Shown here piece after piece: positions 44,901 to 54,268 of a stretch of DNA of 64,000 nucleotides. The stretch lies in sequence record MH221129.1. The stretch is one strand, 5' to 3'. The notes under the pieces are model-generated. The model had not been told where the DNA came from, did not search any database, and was given only the letters and a program-made list of their open reading frames with translations. Every line of letters begins with the position of its first letter. The first letter of the stretch is position 1. A program made the position numbers and the translations under genes.

Positions 44901-47024
44901 GACTTGACCAATAAATACTTCCCTGATGCAGTTGGCTACGGCCCTGATAACTTGCGTGTCGCGCAGGACATCAGTACCTACAACGAGTTCGCTTTGACGC
45001 CGAATGTCTGGAAAGGCAACAAGCTGTACCTGAACGGGCGGGTGATTAATGCGGCGGGAAGTTATCCTTACAAGAATGTCGACGGTACAACCACTTTCAC
45101 CGCAGACCGGATTACCGTGTCTGACGCATTGTGGGCGAGCCTCGAAACCGCGATCGGTGCAGCACTCCCTCTGTGGAATGATGCTGAGACCATCGATAAG
45201 CAGTTCAACGTACACACCTTCGATATCGGAGGTCTGAACGCTGCGTTCTTGGTAGCGACCTGTCGTACCTGGGAAAACGCTGACCATATCCGCGCTTATT
45301 GCCGCACCACTGTCTGGAAAATTCCGATGACGGTGAATAGCGGTAATGTGTCGTTTGGTACAACGGGTTGGGTCGTGGCTGTGCCGGAATGGCGGGATGG
45401 TGAGGCAGCAATCTCACTGATGCGCGATCAAGTGGTGAACTCGAAGTTGGTTGCGCGAGACGACGGGTATGTCATTCAGTTGGGTGCTATATACCGCAGC
45501 GGTGTCGTTGGGGATTCACGTTGGCGTACGTACGTGATGACCTGCGATCAGTCGTTTGACAACTGGACAAACACCATGCGGGCGTTTAATCCGGGGATTG
45601 CTGAGGCTGATTTGTATATTCAGCCAGAAACGGGTTATATCGGCTACACCAAGTGGTTGTATCTGGGCCTGTACGTGGCTGCTGATATTTATCAGAACAC
45701 TTCTCGAACGTTCGCAACTGGAACACCGGTTGAAACGTATCTGGCGGGTGTAAAAACTGCGGAAGGCTGGAACCTGTACATCACCGAGGAAGAGTTGCTG
45801 TCGTTTGGCTCGTCACGTTATACCATCCCGACCTACGGTGTGGACATTCGTGACTTGTATCCAACGAACTACAAGAATCGGACGTTGTACATGCACGCGG
45901 TGCTTAACAACGGTAATCCGGAATACCAACTGCTGGAACAACAGATGCCCGATACGTCAACGCGACTGTACATCGGGTATATGACCAGTGACTCAGAGCG
46001 CATCACGTTCAGTAACTTTGATCGTGTGAAACGTCTGGGTGCAGTTAAACAGCTTCTTGAGCACGAATCTGTTGCCTATCGTCACGATATGGACGTGGGT
46101 CGTGACCAGAAACTGGGCAGACTGGGGCCGTTGTATAAGGAACCTATCGGGGCCATCGCTACGGACTCCTCTCACGGGTATCTCGACAGTCAACAGCTCT
46201 CGAGCGTGGTGGCGGGACAGAAGCGCACCAGAAAAGGCGTCAGCCAGGTGTTTAGCGGATTGTCGCAGGCTTTGATTACTACACAGTCGAATACTGCGTA
46301 CAAATACTGGAAGAAGCCAACGAACATCGTGTCGGTTACGGCGGATGAGAGTGCAGAAGGGGCCGCGTACGGAATGCAGTGGATAGGTGTCCCTCAACCG
46401 GCTGTTGTACCTGCAACAACCGACATGGGCATCCTCGTGCGTGGCAAGTACATTATCCCTGGCACGGTTGGTGATTCCACCGCGTTCGACGTTCGGGTTC
46501 TGCTTCCGTTTGGTTCTTCTGGTACGATCATTAATACCGAAGAGCCTGGGGTCGATGTCGACATGGACAACGATCCTAACGCTCTGGAGACGCCGGCAGA
46601 TGGCAGCGTTGTAACGTTACGACGTTACTCCCCCGCTGGGATTGCGTGTACGATTACGATTCTGGTGGCTATCCCGAAAGACCCGTTAACGGACTTTGGT
46701 CTGCGTGACGTTGCATGGCAAATCGTCGACCTCGGCGGTAATGTGGTGGCGCAAGGTGACGAGTCCAGCTATATCGGGATCGTGCCGTTGGGTACCGCAA
46801 CGCTGGGTACGCCTGTCGTGTTTAATGCTCGCACTTATACCTTTACGGACGTTGATGGTGCTATTCCGTTTGTGACAACTGGCGCAGAAGGGATCGCACC
46901 TGCACTGGTTTCCACTCCACTCGGAAACGGTGATACTGAAATCACGGTCGCTCATCACTTCATGAATGAACGTGGCGAACAAAAGCTTGACGAGGTGCAG
47001 GTCAATCTTATGTTCCGTACCTAA
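41982..47024 (+). CDS. Large tail fibre protein 3 (start revised to MPREDAA)
   Basis: AGGAG RBS; APFY...GLDY module, FGVDKMNNTTPLAKP repeat. Confidence 0.8.
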   Translation: MPREDAAQFNGTLSTLTYPNKYSAVIPVEAPFYRIGLTLTVTDPATNTKRKLIEGLDYYLGHYFKDQAEAEQDAIYGSIMLLNATNIEYELLAVGRQYRIPASEIGKALVKTDLKDPRNSDWADLMKYPPIIAPIDPPKDLDEAILRDEVVKALNDIRLGIIARASELDEAFTDVTNLIFENGKKVFDDEMYQHHLNMNAHHYTCADIRALPVLGKAVDATKAFGRTLAELVDLMSTSGIQQKHVDMLLDNTLGDLLGRMRVLNNDAITFQTTTGHVISVKGEKFIITSPQPMFLKADQDNNDPGIATEFSAGLNTLYVHSGTAANVKAPVYNGVYLVTPDMVGLYLTSVKILPANAYFKSSDTLKIYGSGKQTNRVYMNAELPGATTTVEGLFAITNLSTSVAASTAISQKAVTDLKELLDNYVDDTYTINGKAFIKDSNGEMHLTLTAADFGVDKMNNTTPLAKPVTNALKTVLAGKVASDHTHTIADLDNVPYASTSTTGLAKLWDAIDTTADKMVTSRQGFLLDERINEMNEKISTLLPAWTVGGAQYGNQSFLPIPTVSNFAGFGFNRANPWGAARYEAGNVYMLRNGSDGPEDTRRVYYWYGNVDANNKFTNTYPTAFPYHPAGMSKFPGVTLLRVLTASEDVGLFEGSDGAKYLVLFNGTMNYAKHSEVYKVTFPDLTRTTGGALTYDSVMSFITVALAKTHVVFMMTHVTSDSFKVGGWSVALNALKGTDPIAFSVIPLSYAKMNGDVAQIVDDGAPENDNTATTRLAYVTQGARDKWTRTRTPVNYRPSFFSAAKLNNVRVRSEMHSYFADDKSASWSDAWSVVYNVDIDTGVLTVENPLFPVAITENKIEFPNGTRYKSVTNRNIGVAIYANLFANADFMIDSWSDVYSNNPTNISITPLAGTEFYDLLGSDTTLNESSNVQVIGAVGSVYKQYMRGIIHLGGAERTMLLRYLATSTCISMRYDLTNKYFPDAVGYGPDNLRVAQDISTYNEFALTPNVWKGNKLYLNGRVINAAGSYPYKNVDGTTTFTADRITVSDALWASLETAIGAALPLWNDAETIDKQFNVHTFDIGGLNAAFLVATCRTWENADHIRAYCRTTVWKIPMTVNSGNVSFGTTGWVVAVPEWRDGEAAISLMRDQVVNSKLVARDDGYVIQLGAIYRSGVVGDSRWRTYVMTCDQSFDNWTNTMRAFNPGIAEADLYIQPETGYIGYTKWLYLGLYVAADIYQNTSRTFATGTPVETYLAGVKTAEGWNLYITEEELLSFGSSRYTIPTYGVDIRDLYPTNYKNRTLYMHAVLNNGNPEYQLLEQQMPDTSTRLYIGYMTSDSERITFSNFDRVKRLGAVKQLLEHESVAYRHDMDVGRDQKLGRLGPLYKEPIGAIATDSSHGYLDSQQLSSVVAGQKRTRKGVSQVFSGLSQALITTQSNTAYKYWKKPTNIVSVTADESAEGAAYGMQWIGVPQPAVVPATTDMGILVRGKYIIPGTVGDSTAFDVRVLLPFGSSGTIINTEEPGVDVDMDNDPNALETPADGSVVTLRRYSPAGIACTITILVAIPKDPLTDFGLRDVAWQIVDLGGNVVAQGDESSYIGIVPLGTATLGTPVVFNARTYTFTDVDGAIPFVTTGAEGIAPALVSTPLGNGDTEITVAHHFMNERGEQKLDEVQVNLMFRT

Positions 47025-47071
47025 CAGACAGCGCTATGGGGCATGGACGCCCCAATCAAAGGAGTTTGGCA

Positions 47072-48274
47072 ATGGCCGAAATCATTTATCAGTACCCGCT
47101 TGACCTTACCGGGACATTAACGTCGAACGCCGTTACGCGGCGCATTACGTTAGGTTCTGGTAAAGTTAACCGGGCATTTGCTTTTCCCGACGGGGCTTTC
47201 TACGCGGACACCTTTCGCTTAGCGGCTTCGAACAAACCAGGAGTCTATCCGTGGAAGCGCGGCACAGACTACGAACTGGTCTTTGCACATACCGCCTATC
47301 AGAAAATGACCAAGAACCGCGAAGTGGTCATGGGTGTGGTGGTAACGAACTCGGCCATTCCTACCGACATTGAATGCTTTGCACAAGTCGTCGGGGGTAT
47401 GCAGTCAGCAAACGTCGAGGGGATTCGTCAGGTCATCGCATCGCTGAAAATTGAAGACCGCGTCGTCGACTTCAAAGACCTGCGCAACGTGCCTGATACC
47501 TTCCCGTCAGCACCAACGTATAAAGACCTTGGTGACATCTACGGTTTTGAATACATCATTACCGTGTTGGCGGGCATTAAGGATGCCATCAACTCCGGCT
47601 CTGCAGTACAGCTGGAACAGATTAAAGGTATCCTGGACGGACTGAAGAACGACTTCATGTCTGCTCTGACTGCGCACATTAACGCCGAAGGTAACGTCCA
47701 CCATTTGGACATCCACCAGGCGAATGGTTTAACCGAAACCGAAATTCGTGCCCTTATTCAAAGCGTGCAGACTGCTATCGATGCTACGATTAAAGACATC
47801 GGTGATTTAAAAGCAGCAGATACCGCGTTAGGGCAACGTATTGATGCGATTGTTGCATCTTTGGCCGCGTGGAATGACCAGCTGAACGCTGTAGCTCAGA
47901 ACTACCAGAAAGCGATGTTGGCGTTAGCCAACCTCAATGACCTGGTGTTACAGCTGCAGAAAGCCGTCAATGATCTCCGTAACGAGTTGAATGAAACCAA
48001 CCAACGTGTGGACGATCTCGAGAGCCAGGGCAAAGACTTCCAACAGCAAATTGATAACCTGCAGACTCAGATTAACAATCTGAAAACCCAGGTCACCAAT
48101 AACACCAACGCGATTTCTCAGGCGAACCAAAACCTGGCAAACCACGTTGCTGCGGATAACCCGCATCCGAACTACCTGCACAAACAGTATGGTGGTGTGG
48201 TACAAGCAGCTGTCCACATCAACAACAACCTCACGACACGTGATGATGTTCAGGCGGAAGCCGGTACTAAGTAA
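47072..48274 (+). CDS. Short tail fibre-like protein with long coiled coil (start revised to MAEIIYQ)
   Basis: AAGGAG RBS; shared fibre N-module (GAFY...GTDY), heptad-rich coiled coil, HVAADNPH; ends without an obvious tip domain. Confidence 0.75.
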   Translation: MAEIIYQYPLDLTGTLTSNAVTRRITLGSGKVNRAFAFPDGAFYADTFRLAASNKPGVYPWKRGTDYELVFAHTAYQKMTKNREVVMGVVVTNSAIPTDIECFAQVVGGMQSANVEGIRQVIASLKIEDRVVDFKDLRNVPDTFPSAPTYKDLGDIYGFEYIITVLAGIKDAINSGSAVQLEQIKGILDGLKNDFMSALTAHINAEGNVHHLDIHQANGLTETEIRALIQSVQTAIDATIKDIGDLKAADTALGQRIDAIVASLAAWNDQLNAVAQNYQKAMLALANLNDLVLQLQKAVNDLRNELNETNQRVDDLESQGKDFQQQIDNLQTQINNLKTQVTNNTNAISQANQNLANHVAADNPHPNYLHKQYGGVVQAAVHINNNLTTRDDVQAEAGTK

Positions 48275-48281
48275 TTTATTT

Positions 48282-48330
48282 ACGAGCGGGGTCATGTTTA
48301 TGGAACATGACCCTCTCGTTCTTACTTTTT
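48282..48330 (+). terminator. Hairpin (possible leaky terminator/attenuator) ahead of the Cys-rich genes
   Basis: GGGTCATGTT-TATGG-AACATGACCC with outer ACGAG/CTCGT, followed by TCTTACTTTTT. Confidence 0.5.
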
Positions 48331-48341
48331 AAGGAAGCGTA

Positions 48342-48734
48342 ATGGCGATATCGATTAAAAACGTCCGTGACCGCTTGACCAACGTGGAAAACAATATGGC
48401 AACACAACCGCGTGTTGACCCACAAGTCGCGACGAAGGCGTATAACGCCGCAGACCGATTTGCAGGGTGGACGCCAGCGCAGCTGGATTGCGGGGGTACG
48501 TGCTCTTGGACGTGTTCCAACGGATGCTCACACGGGTGTTCGAGTTGTTCTGGTAGTTGCTCGGCCTCATGTATTGGTAGCTGTTCCTCTACATGCGGTG
48601 GTAACTGTTCCGGTTGTTCTGGTTGTTCCGGTGGCTGTAGTTCTAGCTGTACAGGTAACTGCTCAGGTGGGTGCGGTGGTTCTTGTTCATCGAACTGTTC
48701 AGGGGCTTGTTCGGGTGGCTGCTCTGGCCGATAG
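48342..48734 (+). CDS. CxxxC-repeat Cys/Ser/Gly-rich precursor peptide 1 (130 aa, 21 Cys)
   Basis: Cys-free N-region of 49 aa, then CGGTCSWTCSNGC...; AAGGAAG RBS. Confidence 0.85.
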   Translation: MAISIKNVRDRLTNVENNMATQPRVDPQVATKAYNAADRFAGWTPAQLDCGGTCSWTCSNGCSHGCSSCSGSCSASCIGSCSSTCGGNCSGCSGCSGGCSSSCTGNCSGGCGGSCSSNCSGACSGGCSGR

Positions 48735-48742
48735 GGGGAATA

Positions 48743-49144
48743 ATGGCAATCGGATTAAAAGCACTTAAATCTCGACTCGATGTAGTCGATGCTAATGCTT
48801 TAAAGAATACCACGAACGTGCAGAACTACATTCGTAACAAGGCAACGAATAACACTGATTTATTCGGCGGGCAACCGCGTGCGCATTACGACTGTGGCGG
48901 CACCTGTTCGTTTAGCTGCTCAAGCTGCTCCGGTGGATGTACCGGTTCTGCTTCGGGTGGCTGTGGCTCTACTTGTTCTGCAAACTGTGTCTCTGGTTGC
49001 TCCAGTAGTTGTACAGGTTGTAGTTCATCATGTTCGGGCGGTTGCTCCGGCAGCTGTACAGGTAACTGTTCAGGCGGCTGTGGTAAATCGTGCTCGGCAA
49101 ACTGTTCTGGTTCTTGCTCTGGCGGATGTTCTGGCCCGATGTAA
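48743..49144 (+). CDS. CxxxC-repeat precursor peptide 2 (133 aa, 20 Cys; start revised to MAIGLKA)
   Basis: GGGGGAA RBS; N-region homologous to peptide 1; core CGGTCSFSC... Confidence 0.85.
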   Translation: MAIGLKALKSRLDVVDANALKNTTNVQNYIRNKATNNTDLFGGQPRAHYDCGGTCSFSCSSCSGGCTGSASGGCGSTCSANCVSGCSSSCTGCSSSCSGGCSGSCTGNCSGGCGKSCSANCSGSCSGGCSGPM

Positions 49145-49156
49145 TGGAGGTTACCC

Positions 49157-49363
49157 GTGATAAGTCTCAAGAACGTTCGAGACCGCCTCGTCACTGCAGA
49201 GGGTTATCTCACCACCGCTCAAGCAAACAGCTACATCGCTAACCAGGGAACTGTGTCCACCACGAATAACCTGGCGTCTTTACCCTTGTCCCACTATAAC
49301 TGTAATGGTGGGTGTAGCTGGTCATGTAGCGGAAGCTGCAGCCGTGGCGCAGGAAATCGATAA
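49157..49363 (+). CDS. Short CxxxC precursor peptide 3 (68 aa, 4 Cys, GTG start)
   Basis: GGAGG RBS; ISLKNVRDRL is near-identical to the peptide 1 N-terminus; core CNGGCSWSCSGSC. Confidence 0.8.
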   Translation: MISLKNVRDRLVTAEGYLTTAQANSYIANQGTVSTTNNLASLPLSHYNCNGGCSWSCSGSCSRGAGNR

Positions 49364-49390
49364 TGGCGCTTTAAAAGTTTGGAGTATTAA

Positions 49391-50278
49391 ATGAAGAACG
49401 ATTTGCATCTTGCGTATAAAACCACGTTTAACCACCCACTGCATTTGTCATCACCCGACTCGGTTCGTGCACATCTTGCCGATCAGGTACGCTTGATTGC
49501 ACAGATTCCTGGCGAGTGGCCAAAGGTACGTGGACGTTTTCTTACCAATCCGGAAAACTATACCGTTGAAAATACGTTTAAGATCCGTGATATGGAAGCC
49601 CAAAGCATTGTTATCTTCAACGGCGATGGTAACTCTCGTGGGGTGTTGGTTGGCGGGAAGTATTTCTTCAGTGAAGGGATTTTGAATAACAGTGTGGACT
49701 TAGAATTAATGTTCACACCGTTTGATGAACTGGAAGCGAAACCGATGGCACGCCGTTGGTGGAGTCCGGATTATCTCGGTTCTTTCCCGTACTACTTTGT
49801 GCTGGTTCCAGTAGAAACTGAAACCTACTTTGATACCGAGCCGTATATCGATATCGAAGGCTACAAAGAGTTAGGCATCACCTGTCTCGCGGATATGATG
49901 GCGTATAGCTATAAGTTCGTCTGGGACAAACGTCGTTCGGTCTGGTACGCACTGACTGATGAGTTTGAAATCACTAAACGTATCCGCAAACCGTGGATGC
50001 AGCATTTAGTGCAGACCCGTCACGGTGATTATCCAGCAACCGAAGCCGACTTAAGTAAGCTGGTCAGTTTCTTACTGACGAAAGTTGACCTTACCGACGA
50101 AGAAGCGGAAGCGGTCTCTGAGTTCCGTTCCCGTGCTGTAACGTTGGCCGACTTAAAACGTCTGAACGAACGCCAGTACGACCTGAACAAAATCCTGGCC
50201 GCCTATCACTCGCCAATGCTGCTTGTGCCGGGGGCTAATGTAAACGAAGATCCTTTATTCGCTATTGACTATATTTAA
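49391..50278 (+). CDS. Unknown protein in the radical SAM/Cys-peptide cluster (295 aa)
   Basis: GGAG RBS; aromatic-rich, helical C-terminus; no recognisable motif. Confidence 0.75.
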   Translation: MKNDLHLAYKTTFNHPLHLSSPDSVRAHLADQVRLIAQIPGEWPKVRGRFLTNPENYTVENTFKIRDMEAQSIVIFNGDGNSRGVLVGGKYFFSEGILNNSVDLELMFTPFDELEAKPMARRWWSPDYLGSFPYYFVLVPVETETYFDTEPYIDIEGYKELGITCLADMMAYSYKFVWDKRRSVWYALTDEFEITKRIRKPWMQHLVQTRHGDYPATEADLSKLVSFLLTKVDLTDEEAEAVSEFRSRAVTLADLKRLNERQYDLNKILAAYHSPMLLVPGANVNEDPLFAIDYI

Positions 50279-50299
50279 AAAATACTGGAGCAACCTGCA

Positions 50300-51217
50300 A
50301 TGACAGACAAAGTAGAATCCAGGATCTCGTCTGAACTGTATGACAAACCGTCAATCCTGTCGGTTGTCACAACGTCTAAGTGTAACTTAGACTGTAGCTT
50401 CTGTGGAGGAGCCTATTACATGGATCGCGAGGACACTTCTCGTGAATTTCAACGCAGCCAGATTATGGAACAGCTTGAGCTGAACCCTGGCATTCAGGAG
50501 ATTCACTGGACGGGCGGTGAGCCGTTACTGGCACAGCGTAAAATTGAAGATTTCTTCTTCGAGCTTAAAGAATCACACCCGCACCTCAAACATCAGATGT
50601 ACACCAACGGTTTAAAGATGCGTAAGTCGCATCTGCCGATGCTGAAACAGTTCGACGTCATTTTCGTGTCTATCGACGGCTACACCAAGTCGGAACGTCC
50701 GTTTATGAACTTCATTAACGGCGGTAACCACGAAGCGTTGGAAACGCTGTATGAGCTGGACAACTATTACAGTTGGGGTGTCATGACCCGCGACCAGCTT
50801 GGTGACAAGCGTTGGTACGAAGACTTCATCGAGTTGCACCGTGCGCTGTATCACTACCGTCCAGGTGGTGTGTCGTTGCTGTTCGATGCGATGATGCCTA
50901 AACCGCTCTCGCCAGACCACGTCATGAACTTCATGTACGGATACTGGAAGATTCTGGATAATATCGAACGTCTGAATATGCAGAATGACACGGAATGTGG
51001 CTTGGCTATCAGCAAAATGTTTGATACCGAGTGTAACATCTGTAGCGAAGTGCTGTGGTTAAATGCCGATGGTGCCATCGAGCAAAACCAAAACGCTCCA
51101 GAGATTGTGAGTGTGGGCTGTAACCGACTGGCACGTTCCATCGGGGTTGAAGCTTACAATTACATCAACCGTGTTATTTCTGCTAAACGTATTCGGGCGG
51201 CTAAAAATGAGCAATGA
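50300..51217 (+). CDS. Radical SAM enzyme 1 (305 aa, short Cys-containing C-terminal extension)
   Basis: CNLDCSFC (CX3CX2C), WTGGEPLL, MYTNG, VSIDG; C-terminal CNIC...GC. Confidence 0.92.
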   Translation: MTDKVESRISSELYDKPSILSVVTTSKCNLDCSFCGGAYYMDREDTSREFQRSQIMEQLELNPGIQEIHWTGGEPLLAQRKIEDFFFELKESHPHLKHQMYTNGLKMRKSHLPMLKQFDVIFVSIDGYTKSERPFMNFINGGNHEALETLYELDNYYSWGVMTRDQLGDKRWYEDFIELHRALYHYRPGGVSLLFDAMMPKPLSPDHVMNFMYGYWKILDNIERLNMQNDTECGLAISKMFDTECNICSEVLWLNADGAIEQNQNAPEIVSVGCNRLARSIGVEAYNYINRVISAKRIRAAKNEQ

Positions 51218-52535
51218 CCAACCCATCCAGTATACCCCTCGCACTTATCAGGTCGTAACTAACCTGTCGTGCAACCTCGACTGCGAATATTGCTACGAGC
51301 GTAAATACCCGCGTAACAACAAAGCTGCTGACGTCATCGACTTTATCCACGCCTGTTTTGAGCGTGATAAAGATATCGAAAACGTAGAAGTCATCATCGA
51401 TATCATCGGTGGTGAGCCGTTCATGCAGCCGAAGTTGCTGATTGCTGCTTTTGAAACCGCAGAAGAGTTGTGCAAAATTCACAGCCGTCCGTACATGTTC
51501 AGTATTTCCACGAACGGTACGCTGCTCGATCGCCCACTGAACCGTGAGATTATCGACCGCTGGAAAGACAAGCTGTCTATCGGTGTGTCTATCGATGGTC
51601 TGCCGGAAGTACACGACAAATACCGTATCTTTACAACTACCCGTGAAGGGTCGTATGAAGCTGCGGTGAAAGGGTACAACTACCTGAAAGAAGTCGGTAT
51701 CGCAGAACTGGGCGTTAAAGCAACCTTCACCATCGACACATTGCCGCATTACGGCGCGAGCATGAAGTCGCTGATTGACATGGCGGGCGGTGGTACTATC
51801 TCCGGTAACGTAACGTACGAAGACATTCTGCCTCGTTCGATGGCGTTGGATATCGCTGCGCAGATGATGGACGTGATGGACTACTGGGTGGAAAAAGGTT
51901 TACACACCAACCCGCGTAACATCATCACCCACATCATTCCCGATGGCCTGGACTTCATGCAAATCTGGGACCCTGACTGGCGTGATAAACTGCTGCACGA
52001 CGACACGGTACGTCTGAACCCAGACCGCCTGCGTCCTTACTGCGGTACGCTGACGCACATGACTTGCTTAGGTTTCGACCGTAAGATTTATGGTTGTAAC
52101 CGATTCATGTCGACAGTTACTACACGTTCTGCTGTTGCGGAGCTGGTTGGCCGTGAGTTCGTTAGCCTGGATGGCGGTGCGCTGCTGGAAGAAATTCAGA
52201 CTCAGTACACCAACTACCCGGAAACCTGCCTGGGTTGCCCAATGAAACACAGCTGCGGTAGCTGCGCCGCTGCGTCTTACGAGAACGGCGAAGGGACACT
52301 GGAAGACCGTAAAGCATACCACGCTGAGCGTCGCCAGTGTGGTTGGACCACCGCTAAGCTGATGGCTGCGGAATACTGGTTCCAGAAAATGGGCAGCACC
52401 AAAGGTTCTGACTTCCATGACAAGTCAGTCTGCTATTGTGCACGTTGTGTGCGCCAACGCAAAGAAGCGAATATAAAACAACTATCCGGAGTTCAGAATG
52501 AAGTCGATACTGATTCACAATTTTACGAAGCGTAA
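51207..52535 (+). CDS. Radical SAM/SPASM peptide maturase (442 aa; start revised to MSNDQP)
   Basis: CNLDCEYC, IIGGEPF, ISTNGT, VSIDG; SPASM-like YCG..TC.GFD.KIYGC and CLGCPMKHSCGSC...C; extra CYCARC near the C-terminus. Confidence 0.92.
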   Translation: MSNDQPIQYTPRTYQVVTNLSCNLDCEYCYERKYPRNNKAADVIDFIHACFERDKDIENVEVIIDIIGGEPFMQPKLLIAAFETAEELCKIHSRPYMFSISTNGTLLDRPLNREIIDRWKDKLSIGVSIDGLPEVHDKYRIFTTTREGSYEAAVKGYNYLKEVGIAELGVKATFTIDTLPHYGASMKSLIDMAGGGTISGNVTYEDILPRSMALDIAAQMMDVMDYWVEKGLHTNPRNIITHIIPDGLDFMQIWDPDWRDKLLHDDTVRLNPDRLRPYCGTLTHMTCLGFDRKIYGCNRFMSTVTTRSAVAELVGREFVSLDGGALLEEIQTQYTNYPETCLGCPMKHSCGSCAAASYENGEGTLEDRKAYHAERRQCGWTTAKLMAAEYWFQKMGSTKGSDFHDKSVCYCARCVRQRKEANIKQLSGVQNEVDTDSQFYEA

Positions 52536-53064
52536 ACTACATCTGGTAGATCGTTTCTTGCGTAAGAAGAAACTCTACAACGTTCACGCTATCGTGTCCG
52601 GTGAAGACTTCACGGACGAGATTCAGGGCTTGCTGGTGAAGTACGGCCTGAATGTTATTATCCCTGTTACGTGTGTTGAACAGGGCCACGAATCGGTAGC
52701 GGAAATCGAGAAGCGTAACCCAGGTTTCGAAGCGCGTGTGTTGGCGTACCCTCGCCACAAAATCGAACTGCTTCGTCACTCGGGTTTGGAGCCTAGCCCG
52801 GAGAGTATTATTGCTCTCGGCCTGTCTTTCCCGCGCTTGCGCATTCGCAACCTGCGTAACACTACGCCGGTAGATGCCTACTACACTGAGCGTCAGATGT
52901 TTGAAGAATTCCTTTTCCCGCAGCTGGAAGAGGAAGAACAACATCAGATTTCGGTGCTGTGGGGCGGCGACCTCGATCAGAGCTTCTCATTGCTGGACTT
53001 CGGTTTGCTATTTGAACTTGACCTGATTGAGGAGGACGAATGTCTGCTTCTGACAAAAGCCTGA
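52498..53064 (+). CDS. Unknown protein in the radical SAM cluster (188 aa)
   Basis: Overlaps the rSAM2 3' end (38 nt) and the next gene (25 nt), consistent with coupling. Confidence 0.7.
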   Translation: MKSILIHNFTKRKLHLVDRFLRKKKLYNVHAIVSGEDFTDEIQGLLVKYGLNVIIPVTCVEQGHESVAEIEKRNPGFEARVLAYPRHKIELLRHSGLEPSPESIIALGLSFPRLRIRNLRNTTPVDAYYTERQMFEEFLFPQLEEEEQHQISVLWGGDLDQSFSLLDFGLLFELDLIEEDECLLLTKA

Positions 53065-53711
53065 CGAAAGATGAAATTCGCGCTCGTTATTTTGAGCGCG
53101 ATTTACCTATCGACCGGCACGGTAACTACATGGAGCGTATCGGGGCACAAGACCAGGGTCGTACCGGGTTCTGTGCGCTGTTGCATTACCATTTGATCGA
53201 AGGTATGTCCGACAAAGACGCACTGGCCAAGATGAAACTGTACGAAATGTCAGCCATCGAAGCCAACTTCACACTGAAACGTGCAAAAGAGTTCATTTCC
53301 GATGTTCTGGAAATCGACCTGGACGACATTCGTAAGAACATGAAGTCCACCGCACGTTACATCTACGAAGATGTGCAGAAGATGCTGCAGGAGTTAGACC
53401 ACCGCTACGAAGACCAACGTCACGGATTCATCGAGTTCGAAGGGTGTCATTTCCAGGCGGATGAAAACTCCCGTTCTATCCTCGGGCAATACATCCAGGC
53501 GAACCATGCTCCGGAATACTGGCTTGACACCACCAATACACGCATTGAGCCGTTTAGCGTGGAACAGTGTCAGGCGCTGTTAGCTGCCATTGTACAGCGT
53601 GACCAGGAACTCCACGCGACGATGTCAGACGCGAAGAAACAGATTCGTGTACTGGCAGAAGCGCGGGACTTCACCGGCCTGAAAGCGTTGCAAGAACAGC
53701 TTGGCATGTAA
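53040..53711 (+). CDS. DUF4376-like tail fibre assembly chaperone with N-terminal extra domain
   Basis: C-half FEGCHFQADENSR...WLDTTN...LLAAIVQR...KKQI fits the DUF4376 pattern. Confidence 0.7.
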   Translation: MSASDKSLTKDEIRARYFERDLPIDRHGNYMERIGAQDQGRTGFCALLHYHLIEGMSDKDALAKMKLYEMSAIEANFTLKRAKEFISDVLEIDLDDIRKNMKSTARYIYEDVQKMLQELDHRYEDQRHGFIEFEGCHFQADENSRSILGQYIQANHAPEYWLDTTNTRIEPFSVEQCQALLAAIVQRDQELHATMSDAKKQIRVLAEARDFTGLKALQEQLGM

Positions 53712-53725
53712 ATAAAAAAGAAAGT

Positions 53726-53749
53726 CCTCTCTACCCTAGGGTAGAGAGG
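53726..53749. terminator. Bidirectional terminator closing the fibre/rSAM operon
   Basis: CCTCTCTACCC-TA-GGGTAGAGAGG flanked by A- and T-runs. Confidence 0.85.
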
Positions 53750-53758
53750 TGCTTTTAT

Positions 53759-54268
53759 TTAATTGAACCCATCGAGGTCGCCGTACTTGGTCTGCAGATT
53801 ATCCTTACCATCGTAAACACGGTACACCATTGCGCCCGTCCACTTTAGATGCTCAGAATCAATCTTAACTTTGAATTCCGTCCAATCTTTCCCATCGTTC
53901 CCCGAACCCATCACCGTCAAAGTGATTTCGTCCAGGGTAAGTTTATGATCAGGTAAGAACTGATTAAAGTTGTACAAAACAAATTTGGGATCTGACCAGT
54001 AAGCTACCACATCGCCCATCGCTACGGTATAAACGTCTTCACCGTTCGGATGGGTGAAATCAAATCTTCGATAGTGGTATTCTTTACTTCCTGCGAATGG
54101 ACTGGCCGACTTTGCCGTCAACGTGAGCGCGGTATTACGCACATCGCCTTCCGTAGACGAAGCGTGTTTTGCCGGGCTACTGAAATCTACATCAGCCAAC
54201 GTCAGACCCAACCCTGGGTTCTTGGCATTCACTAAATCAATGATTTCTTCTTGCAAAGTCTTAGCCAT
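53759..54268 (-). CDS. Tail-associated paralog family A (GxLDGF C-terminus)
   Basis: LVNAKNPGL...FAG..YxR...GDLDGFN; GGAG RBS before ATG 54268. Confidence 0.75.
   Translation of the reverse strand: MAKTLQEEIIDLVNAKNPGLGLTLADVDFSSPAKHASSTEGDVRNTALTLTAKSASPFAGSKEYHYRRFDFTHPNGEDVYTVAMGDVVAYWSDPKFVLYNFNQFLPDHKLTLDEITLTVMGSGNDGKDWTEFKVKIDSEHLKWTGAMVYRVYDGKDNLQTKYGDLDGFN

Follow-up and report, generated by a model that had tools for sequence, protein, structure and literature searches.

Results

The locus encodes a fibre protein, three Cys-repeat peptides and two radical SAM enzymes

The window analysed here is a 64,000-nucleotide stretch of record MH221129.1. It originates from Salmonella phage STsAS/SPAsTU, an SPN3US-like jumbo phage. 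The operon runs from a gene for a 400-aa fibre protein through three CXXX-repeat genes, a gene for a 295-aa protein, two radical SAM (rSAM) genes and a gene for a 188-aa protein to a DUF4376 gene. The features are as follows.

47072..48274, + strand: fibre shaft protein, 400 aa (ORF; phrog_2163, E = 1.7e-104; orthologue of SPN3US gp167)
48288..48314, + strand: hairpin with T-rich tail between the fibre gene and the peptide A gene (12-bp stem)
48342..48734, + strand: peptide A, 130 aa, 21 Cys (ORF; phrog_6085, E = 6e-42)
48743..49144, + strand: peptide B, 133 aa, 20 Cys, paralogue of A (ORF; phrog_6085, E = 8e-42)
49157..49363, + strand: peptide C, 68 aa, 4 Cys, GTG start (ORF; phrog_6085, E = 1.5e-23)
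49391..50278, + strand: gp165-like accessory protein, 295 aa (phrog_8030)
50300..51217, + strand: short radical SAM enzyme, rSAM2, 305 aa (Pfam Radical_SAM, 1.2e-14, residues 22-155)
51207..52535, + strand: long radical SAM/SPASM enzyme, rSAM1, peptide-maturase-like, 442 aa (best NCBIfam match TIGR04115)
52498..53064, + strand: gp162-like protein, 188 aa (phrog_7988)
53040..53711, + strand: DUF4376 protein, 223 aa, last gene of the operon (PF14301, 2.6e-10; phrog_2837 'tail protein')
53726..53749, no strand assigned: bidirectional terminator-like hairpin closing the operon (10-bp stem, 6 GC pairs, T-runs on both strands)

The hairpin behind the fibre gene looks like an intrinsic terminator or attenuator. 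The RNA is predicted to fold with an energy of -24.7 kcal/mol (z = -4.45), and none of 200 shuffled sequences folded equally well. Simple 1:1 co-expression of the fibre protein and peptide A fits poorly with so strong a hairpin, followed by a T-rich tail, at this position.

The Cys-repeat ORFs are constrained genes

Peptide A begins with a heptad helix, continues with a C-G-G-T-C-S-W-T-C hinge and ends in CXXX repeats. Peptide C has the N-terminal helix and hinge of A and B, and terminates just past the C-x3-C-S-W sequence. The repeats of A and B are rich in Gly, Ser and Thr, and hold 20-21 Cys in about 80 residues. The NCBIfam repeat model TIGR04114 scores 18.9 bits against peptide A, slightly below its cut-off of 20. 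All three peptides share an a/d hydrophobic pattern at positions 5, 8, 12 and 15. This pattern bears out the description of the N-regions as heptad-like in an earlier note on this DNA, as does the AlphaFold2 (AF2) model of peptide B. In that model, built from a 22-sequence alignment, only a helix at residues 5-36 is predicted; the repeats have a pLDDT of ~40 and no confident fold.

Each ORF is preceded by a correctly spaced Shine-Dalgarno sequence (AAGGAAG for A, GGGGGA for B and GGAGGT for C). In comparisons with SPN3US, dN/dS is 0.04 for peptide A and 0.05 for peptide C, with 0.044 for the fibre gene. Peptide B differs from its SPN3US counterpart by 72 synonymous and 25 non-synonymous changes. 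The other two frames of the peptide genes give ratios above 1.6. The dN/dS values and the Shine-Dalgarno sites rule out chance open frames in a repeat. Sequence comparison hence confirms the three ORFs as real, strongly constrained genes. The trio is kept in loci of four further genera, and peptide C is present in 5 of the 5 loci compared.

The fibre protein ends in a conserved block

From its N-terminus onwards, the fibre protein has an anchor domain, a coiled coil and a conserved C-terminal block of 45 aa. Residues ~180-360 gave matches of coiled-coil type only. The block contains the motif ADNPHPNYL (residues ~360-369), and the protein terminates with the sequence RDDVQAEAGTK. The long coiled coil, DNPH motif and abrupt end noted previously are therefore upheld by the ORF, the coiled-coil matches and the homologues. 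Homologues of full length were compared down to ~43% identity; every one has 396-400 aa, and none carries an added C-terminal domain. We rejected truncation as the reason for the missing distal domain, because these homologues are equal in length.

The last 45 residues are the best conserved part of the protein, with a mean column identity of 0.76 versus 0.48 in the preceding coiled coil. Residues H358, A361, P364, H365, Y368 and L369 are invariant across 26 homologues. Such conservation argues that the fibre end is not a variable receptor-binding tip.

The N-terminal domain occurs in 222 jumbo-phage records. Only 64 phage records have the full-length fibre, and the full rSAM occurs in 63. A distant homologue, P0055, has neither the 45-residue block nor the enzyme cassette. 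Co-occurrence, which is the sole basis for this placement, suggests that the peptides probably dock at the C-terminus of the 400-aa fibre. The conserved block could instead be a self-contained trimerisation unit.

Virion proteomics of SPN3US

Purified virions of SPN3US were found to contain the orthologue of the fibre protein, gp167 ('virion structural protein 20'), which is not among the proteins assigned to the head (PMC5694885, Suppl. Table 1). The same virion list contains none of gp161-166 (PMC5694885), and so the gp165-like and gp162-like proteins are absent from it. The sole CDS annotated at the peptide region, gp166, is in the wrong frame; the peptide ORFs are otherwise unannotated. 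Hence, these proteomic data are uninformative with respect to the peptides. Cys-repeat ORFs are often missed or mis-framed, a systematic annotation gap that has left proteomic studies blind to these ORFs.

Absence of gp161-166 from the virion list would suit a transient assembly module. The CXXX segment would nucleate or clamp fibre trimerisation, and then be released or cleaved, leaving none in mature virions. The hairpin after the fibre gene would permit the sub-stoichiometric expression that such a role implies, and the module is encoded separately in the window, near the DUF4376 chaperone gene. Some tailspikes and fibres set a precedent with their intramolecular chaperone domains. We nevertheless consider a transient role unlikely. 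A part to be discarded would hardly warrant tracts of hundreds of residues and two rSAM enzymes dedicated to their maturation, and no protease or autoproteolytic domain was found among the operon proteins in Pfam, NCBIfam or PHROGs. The architecture of relatives in other phages, described below, bears on both sides of the question.

The enzymes resemble thioether-forming maturases

The long enzyme, rSAM1, is most similar to the maturase model of the CXXX-repeat target family (TIGR04115; 4.4e-35). The score of 121.8 bits is below the cut-off of 350. Scores are likewise below the cut-off for the PapB family, which ranks second (4e-31; 108.5 bits versus 340), and for the SCIFF maturase model (54.2 versus 425). 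The best match in the PDB is CteB (5wgg; 7.9e-10). By these profile scores, rSAM1 is a relative of the PapB and CteB maturases and not a family member. Since its scores fall far below the TIGR04115 and PapB cut-offs, transfer of their chemistry to rSAM1 is weak. The cysteines of the CX3CX2C motif (C22, C26 and C29) and of the SPASM domain (C279, C297, C341, C344, C350, C353 and C378) are invariant in 8 sequences. The maturases of freyrasin (PapB) and SCIFF (CteB) have the same combination of an rSAM core and a 7-Cys SPASM domain. In the substrates of ranthipeptide and sactipeptide maturases, regularly spaced cysteines become thioether cross-links. We infer by analogy with these relatives that the window enzymes would carry out thioether chemistry.

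The extreme density of cysteines in peptides A and B would also suit a fibre domain that binds metal and has no covalent staples. Chains would be joined by metal or Fe-S coordination, and the rSAM enzymes would modify the peptides otherwise or load a cofactor. The long tail fibre tip of T4 is a metal-lined needle. In addition, a cellular relative of the module has a Tat signal and its own TatA and TatC genes, and Tat is a route for folded, cofactor-bearing proteins. This explanation seems to us distinctly unlikely. The closest characterised relatives of rSAM1, namely the PapB family and the SCIFF maturase CteB, make Cys-derived thioethers, and a full 7-Cys SPASM domain is typical of maturases that cross-link peptides. 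The AF2 model of peptide B contains no metal-site-like fold, although this is weak evidence.

The short enzyme, rSAM2, has a CX3CX2C motif and a few C-terminal cysteines; a full SPASM domain is absent. A GGAG Shine-Dalgarno sequence precedes the ATG at position 50300, and the cluster motif is encoded at ~50378-50401. The deposited start, equivalent to position 50420 of the window, removes the cluster motif.

The gp165-like protein is modelled by AF2 with a pLDDT of 87.7. Foldseek searches of the PDB and BFVD found no fold neighbour except its own orthologue. Profile searches against PDB sequences gave only chance-level matches for both the gp165-like and gp162-like proteins. The former is conserved together with both rSAMs in unrelated phages and is found in most type-II loci. 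The latter is confined to the jumbo-phage clade (L018-L021 among 84 loci).

The last gene of the operon had previously been taken to encode a DUF4376-like fibre chaperone. Its product matches PF14301 with 41.1 bits against a cut-off of 25, in agreement with that assignment. DUF4376 proteins of Alteromonas phages V22 and A5 were shown by experiment to be tail-fibre chaperones (PMC7289586, PMC10579305). The window protein is, from its sequence, a probable tail-fibre chaperone.

The same module is part of tail fibres in other phages

An HMM built from the peptides retrieved 447 representative proteins, and architecture was scored on the best 150 of these. The hinge motif is present in 67 of the best 150 matches. 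In 47 of the 150, the repeats form a C-terminal domain after at least 150 residues. A further arrangement, seen in 28 of the 150, has at least 100 residues beyond the repeats, including globular and Ig-like domains. Tracts have up to 168 Cys, and behind some of them lie Ig-like domains or domains of ~190 aa. Such lengths, and the domains behind some tracts, indicate that the repeats behave as a stalk and not as a small product or RiPP core.

The C-terminal location of the module in most fusions, where fibre trimerisation usually begins, fits the transient role considered above. Conversely, removal of the repeats from the 28 proteins with long C-terminal extensions would lose the domains beyond them.

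The tail-fibre-like proteins that have the module at their C-terminus are 185-559 aa long; among the HMM matches, lengths reach ~1,800 aa. In the fusions, helix, hinge and CXXX repeats together make up a C-terminal domain behind tail-fibre N-terminal domains. These belong to phrog_910 'tail collar fiber' in P0129 and P0200, to phrog_1640 'tail protein' (3.7e-31) and tail-fibre phrogs in P0206, and to the tail-fibre phrogs phrog_5073 and phrog_9851 in P0063. The C-terminus of every fusion protein scanned belongs to the peptide family, phrog_6085.

Gene context was read for four fusion genes (P0139, P0206, P0193 and P0125) and six further type-II viral loci (L022-L027), and each is in a tail or virion-structural block. 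Their neighbours encode a gpJ-like central fibre (1e-167), a baseplate wedge, a tail fibre and SU10 portal/adaptor proteins. In all ten cases rSAM genes are directly 3' of the module gene. Every fused fibre gene for which the neighbours were read occupies the tail-fibre position, and the cassette behind it comprises a short rSAM, a gp165-like protein and a long rSAM/SPASM enzyme. Loci with a fused fibre occur in lambda-like, P2-like, SU10-like and T4-like phages. The module is in a tail-fibre/baseplate block in the window and four further genera, and also at L004, L005, L014-L016, L022, L024, L026, L027, L034 and L098.

The enzymes of these loci are related to those of the window. Comparison of rSAM1 with the rSAMs at fused-fibre loci gave values from 1e-55 to 3.5e-65, the latter for L016, where the gene adjoins the fused fibre. 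The short rSAMs of L014 and L016 match rSAM2 at 1e-6 and 6e-6. Accessory proteins L016_296 (3e-7) and L015_239 (4e-6) match the gp165-like protein in phmmer searches. Accessory proteins of Firmicutes-type loci (192/102 aa and 204/97 aa) have no detectable similarity to those of the window; hence, we treat these loci as a separate subtype.

A relative of the rSAM is encoded on 368 IMG/VR contigs. Among these, 71 of the 80 loci examined have a CXXX ORF nearby on the same strand. When genome contigs were scanned with a generic rSAM pattern, CXXX ORFs were found at 15 of 80 loci, the others being different rSAM families.

The peptides could alternatively be precursors of a classical RiPP natural product. 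The product would then be bioactive, either diffusible or acting inside the cell (a bacteriocin or a host-takeover factor, for example), and its genes would be near tail genes by chance. The layout resembles that of a RiPP cluster: beside the rSAM/SPASM maturase relatives are several paralogues that look like precursors, conserved in the N-region and Cys-rich in the C-region. NCBIfam files the family as an rSAM 'target'. Moreover, cargo genes of temperate phages are often found 3' of tail fibres. We regard a natural product as very unlikely. The earlier note had seen no peptidase, exporter or signal peptide in the operon. Our searches concur: none of the 9 operon proteins matched a peptidase or ABC transporter in Pfam, NCBIfam or PHROGs, and no hydrophobic signal segment was found at the N-termini of peptides A-C. 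The exported cellular version has an explicit Tat signal and Tat genes, and the phage version has none. In many phages the whole module, including the supposed 'leader', is fused to tail-fibre proteins, and there is no stand-alone short core; tracts of up to 168 Cys are also out of keeping with such a product. Finally, strictly lytic jumbo phages from four genera keep the module in one place, between the genes for the fibre and its chaperone.

Discussion

Our data favour, as the likely reading, that peptides A-C are a split-off distal module of the tail fibre and not precursors of diffusible natural products. An enzyme-modified structural part of the fibre is most likely because the same module is a fibre end domain elsewhere, beside the same enzymes. 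Comparative sequence support for a structural component is strong. The previous proposal, of a fibre tip instead of a secreted product, hence stands with respect to the structural part, given the domain fusions, tail loci and shared cassette. Its picture of a receptor-binding tip may be wrong; the CXXX tract is an internal stalk in several relatives.

Other observations also count against the structural reading. The pair of CXXX protein and rSAM enzyme works outside fibres too, as the Tat-linked cellular relative illustrates, and the region 3' of tail fibres in temperate phages is a common cargo site.

As a part of the fibre, the peptides would be made and modified as follows. Each would consist of a short amphipathic helix that continues the coiled coil, the C-x3-C-S-W hinge and the CXXX tract. 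Late in infection, rSAM1, as a relative of the thioether-forming PapB and CteB, would modify the repeat cysteines in the cytoplasm, with rSAM2 and the gp165-like protein assisting. The likeliest product would be thioether cross-links, which are redox-insensitive. The modified repeats would then form a stiff, protease-resistant rod, and the DUF4376 chaperone would aid oligomerisation. We infer both the oligomeric state of the peptides and their presence in virions. The rod would attach to the fibre of the virion, with the conserved C-terminal 45 residues of the shaft protein (400 aa) as the probable site. We judge the chances to be about even that an rSAM-stapled rod, with Cys at every fourth residue, is a new fibrous protein in the tail fibres of many unrelated phages, here in the form of three small proteins assembled on a coiled-coil shaft.

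The sequence families of the peptides and enzymes are already known. The CXXX-repeat rSAM target system (TIGR04114 repeat, TIGR04117 paralogues and TIGR04115 maturase; PF27846) resembles the window in having tandem Cys-Xaa3 repeats beside an rSAM/SPASM enzyme. The prophage rSAM of L004 passes the TIGR04115 cut-off (389.2 versus 350); the rSAM of L008 fails (294.6). The window differs in its sub-cut-off scores (121.8/350 for the maturase and 18.9/20 for the repeat). Its subtype is further set apart by two rSAMs, the gp165-like protein and the C-x3-C-S-W hinge. To our knowledge, the CXXX-repeat target family has been defined by bioinformatics only and is filed as a peptide-modification system. 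A published tail-fibre role for the family was not found in the searchable literature, and searches that paired radical SAM with tail fibre, thioether or maturase had no relevant result.

The substrates in the window are proteins of 68-133 aa, and, in the loci read elsewhere, domains of ~250-560-aa fibres, whereas those of PapB and CteB are short secreted peptides. Unlike the PapB and CteB systems, the window has no leader protease or exporter. The layout of the operon is instead reminiscent of multi-protein fibres. In T4 (gp34-37 with gp38/gp57A) and Alteromonas phage V22 (fibre with the DUF4376 chaperone gp27), proteins are arranged end to end; the N-terminal anchor is conserved and the distal part can be exchanged. 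Downstream of such fibre genes lies a chaperone gene, whose product is not in virions. We know of no fibre that has a Cys-repeat rod or requires radical SAM enzymes.

Collagen-like repeats and the glycine-rich adhesin tips of T-even-type phages are likewise small-residue repeat tracts of variable length that serve as shaft or tip. The CXXX tracts differ by a period of four, an invariant Cys, dedicated modifying enzymes and a fold that AF2 does not recognise. At L004, a collagen-repeat fibre gene is directly upstream of the CXXX gene. The proposed rod would share with the HK97 capsid chainmail the use of covalent bonds to stabilise an extracellular particle assembled in the reducing cytoplasm. 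In HK97 the links are isopeptide bonds that form autocatalytically within the capsid. Those proposed here would be enzyme-made, radical-mediated and Cys-based, and would be located in the fibre.

If the stapled rod exists, RiPP-type chemistry would build a part of the virion, with redox-proof cross-links, made in the cytoplasm, in place of disulfides. This use would span sipho-, podo-, myo- and jumbo viruses. We know of no earlier virion protein that is matured by radical SAM chemistry; the structural reading, if true, would be the first case. It would provide phage structural biology with a new fibrous fold, RiPP enzymology with very large protein substrates as a new class, and an account of the 'antibiotic-like' rSAM genes in jumbo phages and many prophages. 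Since 2011 the family has been listed as a predicted system for peptide natural products; in phages it would then be a structural host-recognition element.

Organisation of the operon

Region 47000-53800 of the window matches Salmonella phages STsAS and SPAsTU at 100% identity. SPN3US, the type Seoulvirus and a phiKZ-like jumbo phage, is ~80% identical at the DNA level over the same interval. The order of the genes is kept in SPN3US and in the Erwinia phages Asesino (Erskinevirus), Wellington and Derbicus.

Genes of the region, in order, with SPN3US counterparts
Gene 1: large baseplate/fibre protein; gp168
Gene 2: 47072-48274 (+), 400-aa 'virion structural protein', here the fibre; gp167
Genes 3-5: 48342-49363 (+), three small ORFs encoding peptides A (48342-48734), B (48743-49144) and C (49157-49363)
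Gene 6: 49391-50278, ~295-aa protein, here gp165h; gp165
Gene 7: from 50300, short radical SAM protein (rSAM2); gp164
Gene 8: 51207-52535, long radical SAM protein (rSAM1); gp163
Gene 9: ~188-aa protein; gp162
Gene 10: DUF4376 protein; gp161

The earlier note proposed that the peptides may be structural parts of the fibre, not secreted natural products, in an operon closed by a DUF4376-like fibre chaperone. The DUF4376 assignment is above the Pfam cut-off, and DUF4376 proteins of Alteromonas phages V22 and A5 are tail-fibre chaperones by experiment (PMC7289586, PMC10579305). In line with the earlier note, no peptidase or ABC transporter match was obtained for any of the nine operon proteins in Pfam, NCBIfam or PHROGs. 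Several genes overlap: rSAM2 and rSAM1 by 11 nt (51207-51217), rSAM1 and the gp162-like gene by 38 nt (52498-52535), and the latter and the DUF4376 gene by 25 nt (53040-53064). The overlaps suggest translational coupling of the maturation genes. A hairpin with a T-rich tail separates the fibre gene from peptide A (48288-48314, -24.7 kcal/mol, z -4.45). Possibly it acts as an attenuator and so controls how much of the downstream products is made relative to the fibre. So stable a structure at this position is a weak point of the structural interpretation.

The three peptide ORFs are genes

Peptides A, B and C are 130, 133 and 68 aa long, and a Shine-Dalgarno sequence lies ahead of each gene. 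Compared with SPN3US, the cysteine frame has 66-72 synonymous and 24-25 non-synonymous changes. The resulting dN/dS of ~0.04-0.05 equals that of the fibre gene; the two other frames exceed 1.6. The three ORFs are genuine genes. All three products share a hinge containing C-x3-C-S-W and an N-terminal helix that is hydrophobic at positions 5, 8, 12 and 15. In peptides A and B, CXXX repeats cover ~80 residues. AF2 did not yield a fold for these repeats, another weak point of the structural interpretation.

Over the CXXX repeats there is no stop in any of the three frames. Deposited genomes often miss these ORFs, or call the wrong frame or strand. The only CDS annotated in the peptide interval of SPN3US, gp166, is in the wrong frame. 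Derbicus gp161/162, Wellington gp183 and Asesino gp184/186 are also miscalled, and STsAS has none of the three ORFs annotated.

Sites of cysteine-repeat ORFs with annotation faults (L-numbers are compared genomic loci)
Window: 48342-49363
L001: 10817-11152
L010: 4171-4976
L011: 4224-4553
L012: 4356-4940

Because the peptides lie outside the annotation, virion proteomics relying on it could not detect them. Hence, the absence of gp161-166 from the SPN3US virion list carries no information about the peptides. The absence of the enzymes, gp165, gp162 and the DUF4376 chaperone fits a role as assembly factors.

In other phages the peptide module is fused to tail fibres

We searched 1.84 billion representative proteins with a profile of the window peptides and their few relatives in databases. 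There were 447 matches, many of them long proteins with the whole module at the C-terminus. In these, the end of a coiled coil leads into an L-x-G-x5-Y-Y-x-C-x3-C-S-W-x-C hinge and then CXXX repeats. Examples among the matched proteins (P-numbers) are P0131 (559 aa), P0139 (494 aa), P0193 (475 aa), P0206 (429 aa), P0199 (391 aa), P0129 and P0200 (370 aa), P0125 (252 aa), P0123 (243 aa) and P0116/P0118 (211-213 aa). Among the 150 best matches, 67 have the hinge, 47 have 150 or more residues ahead of the repeats, which form the C-terminal domain, and 28 have at least 100 residues beyond the repeats.

Scanned against PHROG families, the N-terminal parts were identified as tail-fibre parts. Those of P0129 and P0200 matched phrog_910 'tail collar fiber', that of P0206 matched phrog_1640 'tail protein' and several tail-fibre families, and P0063 matched phrog_5073/9851. 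The family of the window peptides, phrog_6085, was matched C-terminally in every fusion protein scanned. These profile matches show that the module is a domain of tail fibres.

The N-terminal helix of the peptides aligns with the last coiled-coil turns of the fused fibres. Since it corresponds to fibre shaft in the fused relatives, a leader that is cut off appears unlikely. The repeat tracts point to a stalk and are hard to reconcile with a small molecule made from a RiPP core. They range from 8 to 168 cysteines, the higher figure being the maximum among the 150 best matches, and this variation resembles that of collagen-like or beta-helical fibre shafts. In P0110, ~550 residues of repeats end a 1610-aa protein. 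P0117 and P0120 have repeated Ig-like domains beyond the repeats, and loci L050 and L068 encode a ~190-aa domain there. The very large CXXX proteins (P0110-P0115, P0117 and P0120) reach ~1800 aa and 168 cysteines.

A cellular counterpart was also found. P0067 is a 102-aa CXXX protein with a twin-arginine signal, encoded in a non-phage operon alongside an rSAM, TatA and TatC. The non-phage operon at L179 (2996-7107) consists of genes for a CXXX protein with a Tat signal, an rSAM, TatA/B, TatC and two unknown proteins, together with a 63-aa ORF. It represents the system in cellular form, with export through Tat machinery of its own. Export genes can be seen where the product is exported; the phage operon is without any.

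The fibre ends in a conserved block

The fibre ORF has the features described earlier: a long stretch matching coiled-coil families only, ADNPHPNYL close to the end, and the terminus RDDVQAEAGTK. Full-length homologues at identities down to ~43% all measure 396-400 aa; hence, the end that the earlier note called abrupt is a conserved one, and a truncation is ruled out. The last 45 residues are the best-conserved block (0.76, versus 0.48 in the preceding coiled coil). Judged by conservation, this is the opposite of what is expected of a receptor-binding tip. SPN3US gp167 is a virion protein with no head assignment (PMC5694885 Suppl. Table 1). Its spectral count per mass is 1.90, compared with 0.93 for the portal (12 copies) and far higher values for sheath and tube (PMC5694885).

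The N-terminal ~200-260 residues are common to 222 jumbo-phage records, in which the C-terminal parts differ. These include phiKZ-like Pseudomonas phages, 201phi2-1, PhiPA3, Goslar and PCH45, and the domain (47072-47850, residues ~5-260) also occurs in Serratia, Klebsiella and Ralstonia phages. Some records are annotated 'short tail fiber'. The distribution is that of a conserved anchor whose distal modules can be exchanged. Full-length matches were limited to 64 records, practically the same set as the 63 with full rSAM1. The most distant homologue found, P0055, keeps the N-domain and is without the conserved C-terminal block; its locus (L181) showed no CXXX ORF or CX3CX2C gene within 9 kb. 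This co-occurrence is compatible with a docking role for the block, as a weaker link. In several SPFM Salmonella phage records (LR535901-LR535913) the fibre, gp165 and rSAM match in short pieces at 40-60% identity; sister records match at ~90% throughout. This looks like a sequence-quality problem rather than biology.

An enzyme cassette accompanies the fused fibres

In every case where the context was read, rSAM genes follow the fused gene at once.

Gene order at fused-fibre loci (sizes in aa)
L014, large contig with T4 gp13-like gene: fibre-CXXX 494, rSAM 273, rSAM 369
L015, prophage with integrase: fibre-CXXX 429, 239, rSAM 270, rSAM 391, endolysin
L016/L017, lambda-like, 3' of gpJ-like 1066-aa protein: fibre-CXXX 475, rSAM 277, 296, 238, rSAM 391, lysis genes
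L098, SU10-like podovirus: fibre-CXXX 252, rSAM 254, 247, rSAM 376

rSAM1 matched the long rSAMs of these loci at 1e-55 to 3.5e-65, rSAM2 the short rSAMs at ~1e-6, and gp165h the 239-296-aa proteins at 3e-7 and 4e-6. On these similarities, the three window proteins are orthologues of the cassette proteins. In IMG/VR, a scan identified 368 viral contigs that encode a long-rSAM relative, and 71 of the 80 loci fetched have a same-strand CXXX ORF nearby. Among the genes upstream of these ORFs are central tail fibre J (L022, 1e-167), a baseplate wedge in a P2-like position (L024) and tail-fibre proteins (L026, L027, L034 and L005).

The slot 3' of tail fibres in temperate phages is also used for cargo genes, which is a further weak point of the structural interpretation. 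The loci fall into two types. Type I, mainly in Firmicutes-like prophages, has a ~110-aa N-domain with repeats and only one rSAM, which can pass the TIGR04115 cut-off, besides two small accessory proteins. Type II, to which the window belongs, has the hinge, two rSAMs, a gp165-like protein and fusion to fibres. The module was fused to a larger protein in 10/10 type II loci examined outside the SPN3US-like clade. By this comparison, the split into three small proteins is peculiar to the jumbo-phage clade. Gene context shows the cassette to be co-inherited with the fibre module.

The predicted maturation proteins

The long rSAM has a CX3CX2C motif and seven more invariant cysteines, forming a full SPASM domain. 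Its best families are TIGR04115 (NCBIfam; 'radical SAM peptide maturase, CXXX-repeat target family', 4.4e-35) and the PapB ranthipeptide maturase (4e-31), both scores being far under the curated cut-offs. The best solved relative is PDB entry 5wgg, the SCIFF thioether maturase CteB. The chemistry is uncertain because the enzyme is distant from characterised maturases. Peptide A scores just under the TIGR04114 repeat cut-off.

The short rSAM has the cluster motif but not a complete SPASM domain. In STsAS and SPN3US, its start as deposited (equivalent to window 50420) falls 3' of the CX3CX2C motif. Translation from the ATG at 50300, which has GGAG ahead of it, would produce 305 aa with the motif included, and the Erwinia phage records use this longer form. 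The AF2 model of gp165h is confident (pLDDT 87.7), with a curved beta-sheet and a helical C-terminal part. No structural neighbour was found in PDB or BFVD beyond its own orthologue, and the modelled fold may be new. gp165h is co-conserved with the two rSAMs.

Discussion

Fusion to tail fibres, co-inheritance of the cassette and the lack of export and processing genes make it probable, as the earlier note proposed, that the peptides are structural; comparative genomics supports this interpretation well. By analogy with PapB and CteB, the long rSAM would form Cys-derived thioether bridges along the repeats. The short rSAM would make a second modification, or act on a subset of sites, and gp165h would hold or present the substrate. 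Once modified, the repeats would make a stiff rod. The coiled coil would be extended by the helices of A, B and C, or of three copies of each, which would dock on the C-terminal block of the shaft, assisted by the DUF4376 chaperone. With three paralogues, one of which stops right behind the hinge, the assembly could be either a heterotrimer or three distinct homotrimers. Fibres persist outside the cell yet are assembled in the reducing cytoplasm, where disulfides do not form. Hence, we infer that enzyme-made thioethers would give permanent cross-links.

CXXX/rSAM systems are already known as a bioinformatically defined kind, with families in databases (phrog_6085, phrog_1802, TIGR04114/04115 and PF27846). 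In the searchable literature, we found nothing linking CXXX repeats or these rSAMs to tail fibres. In a recent phage paper (PMC12801897), the label 'antibiotic synthesis gene' is given to a gene for an rSAM maturase. That label is the default reading, and the present evidence argues against it.
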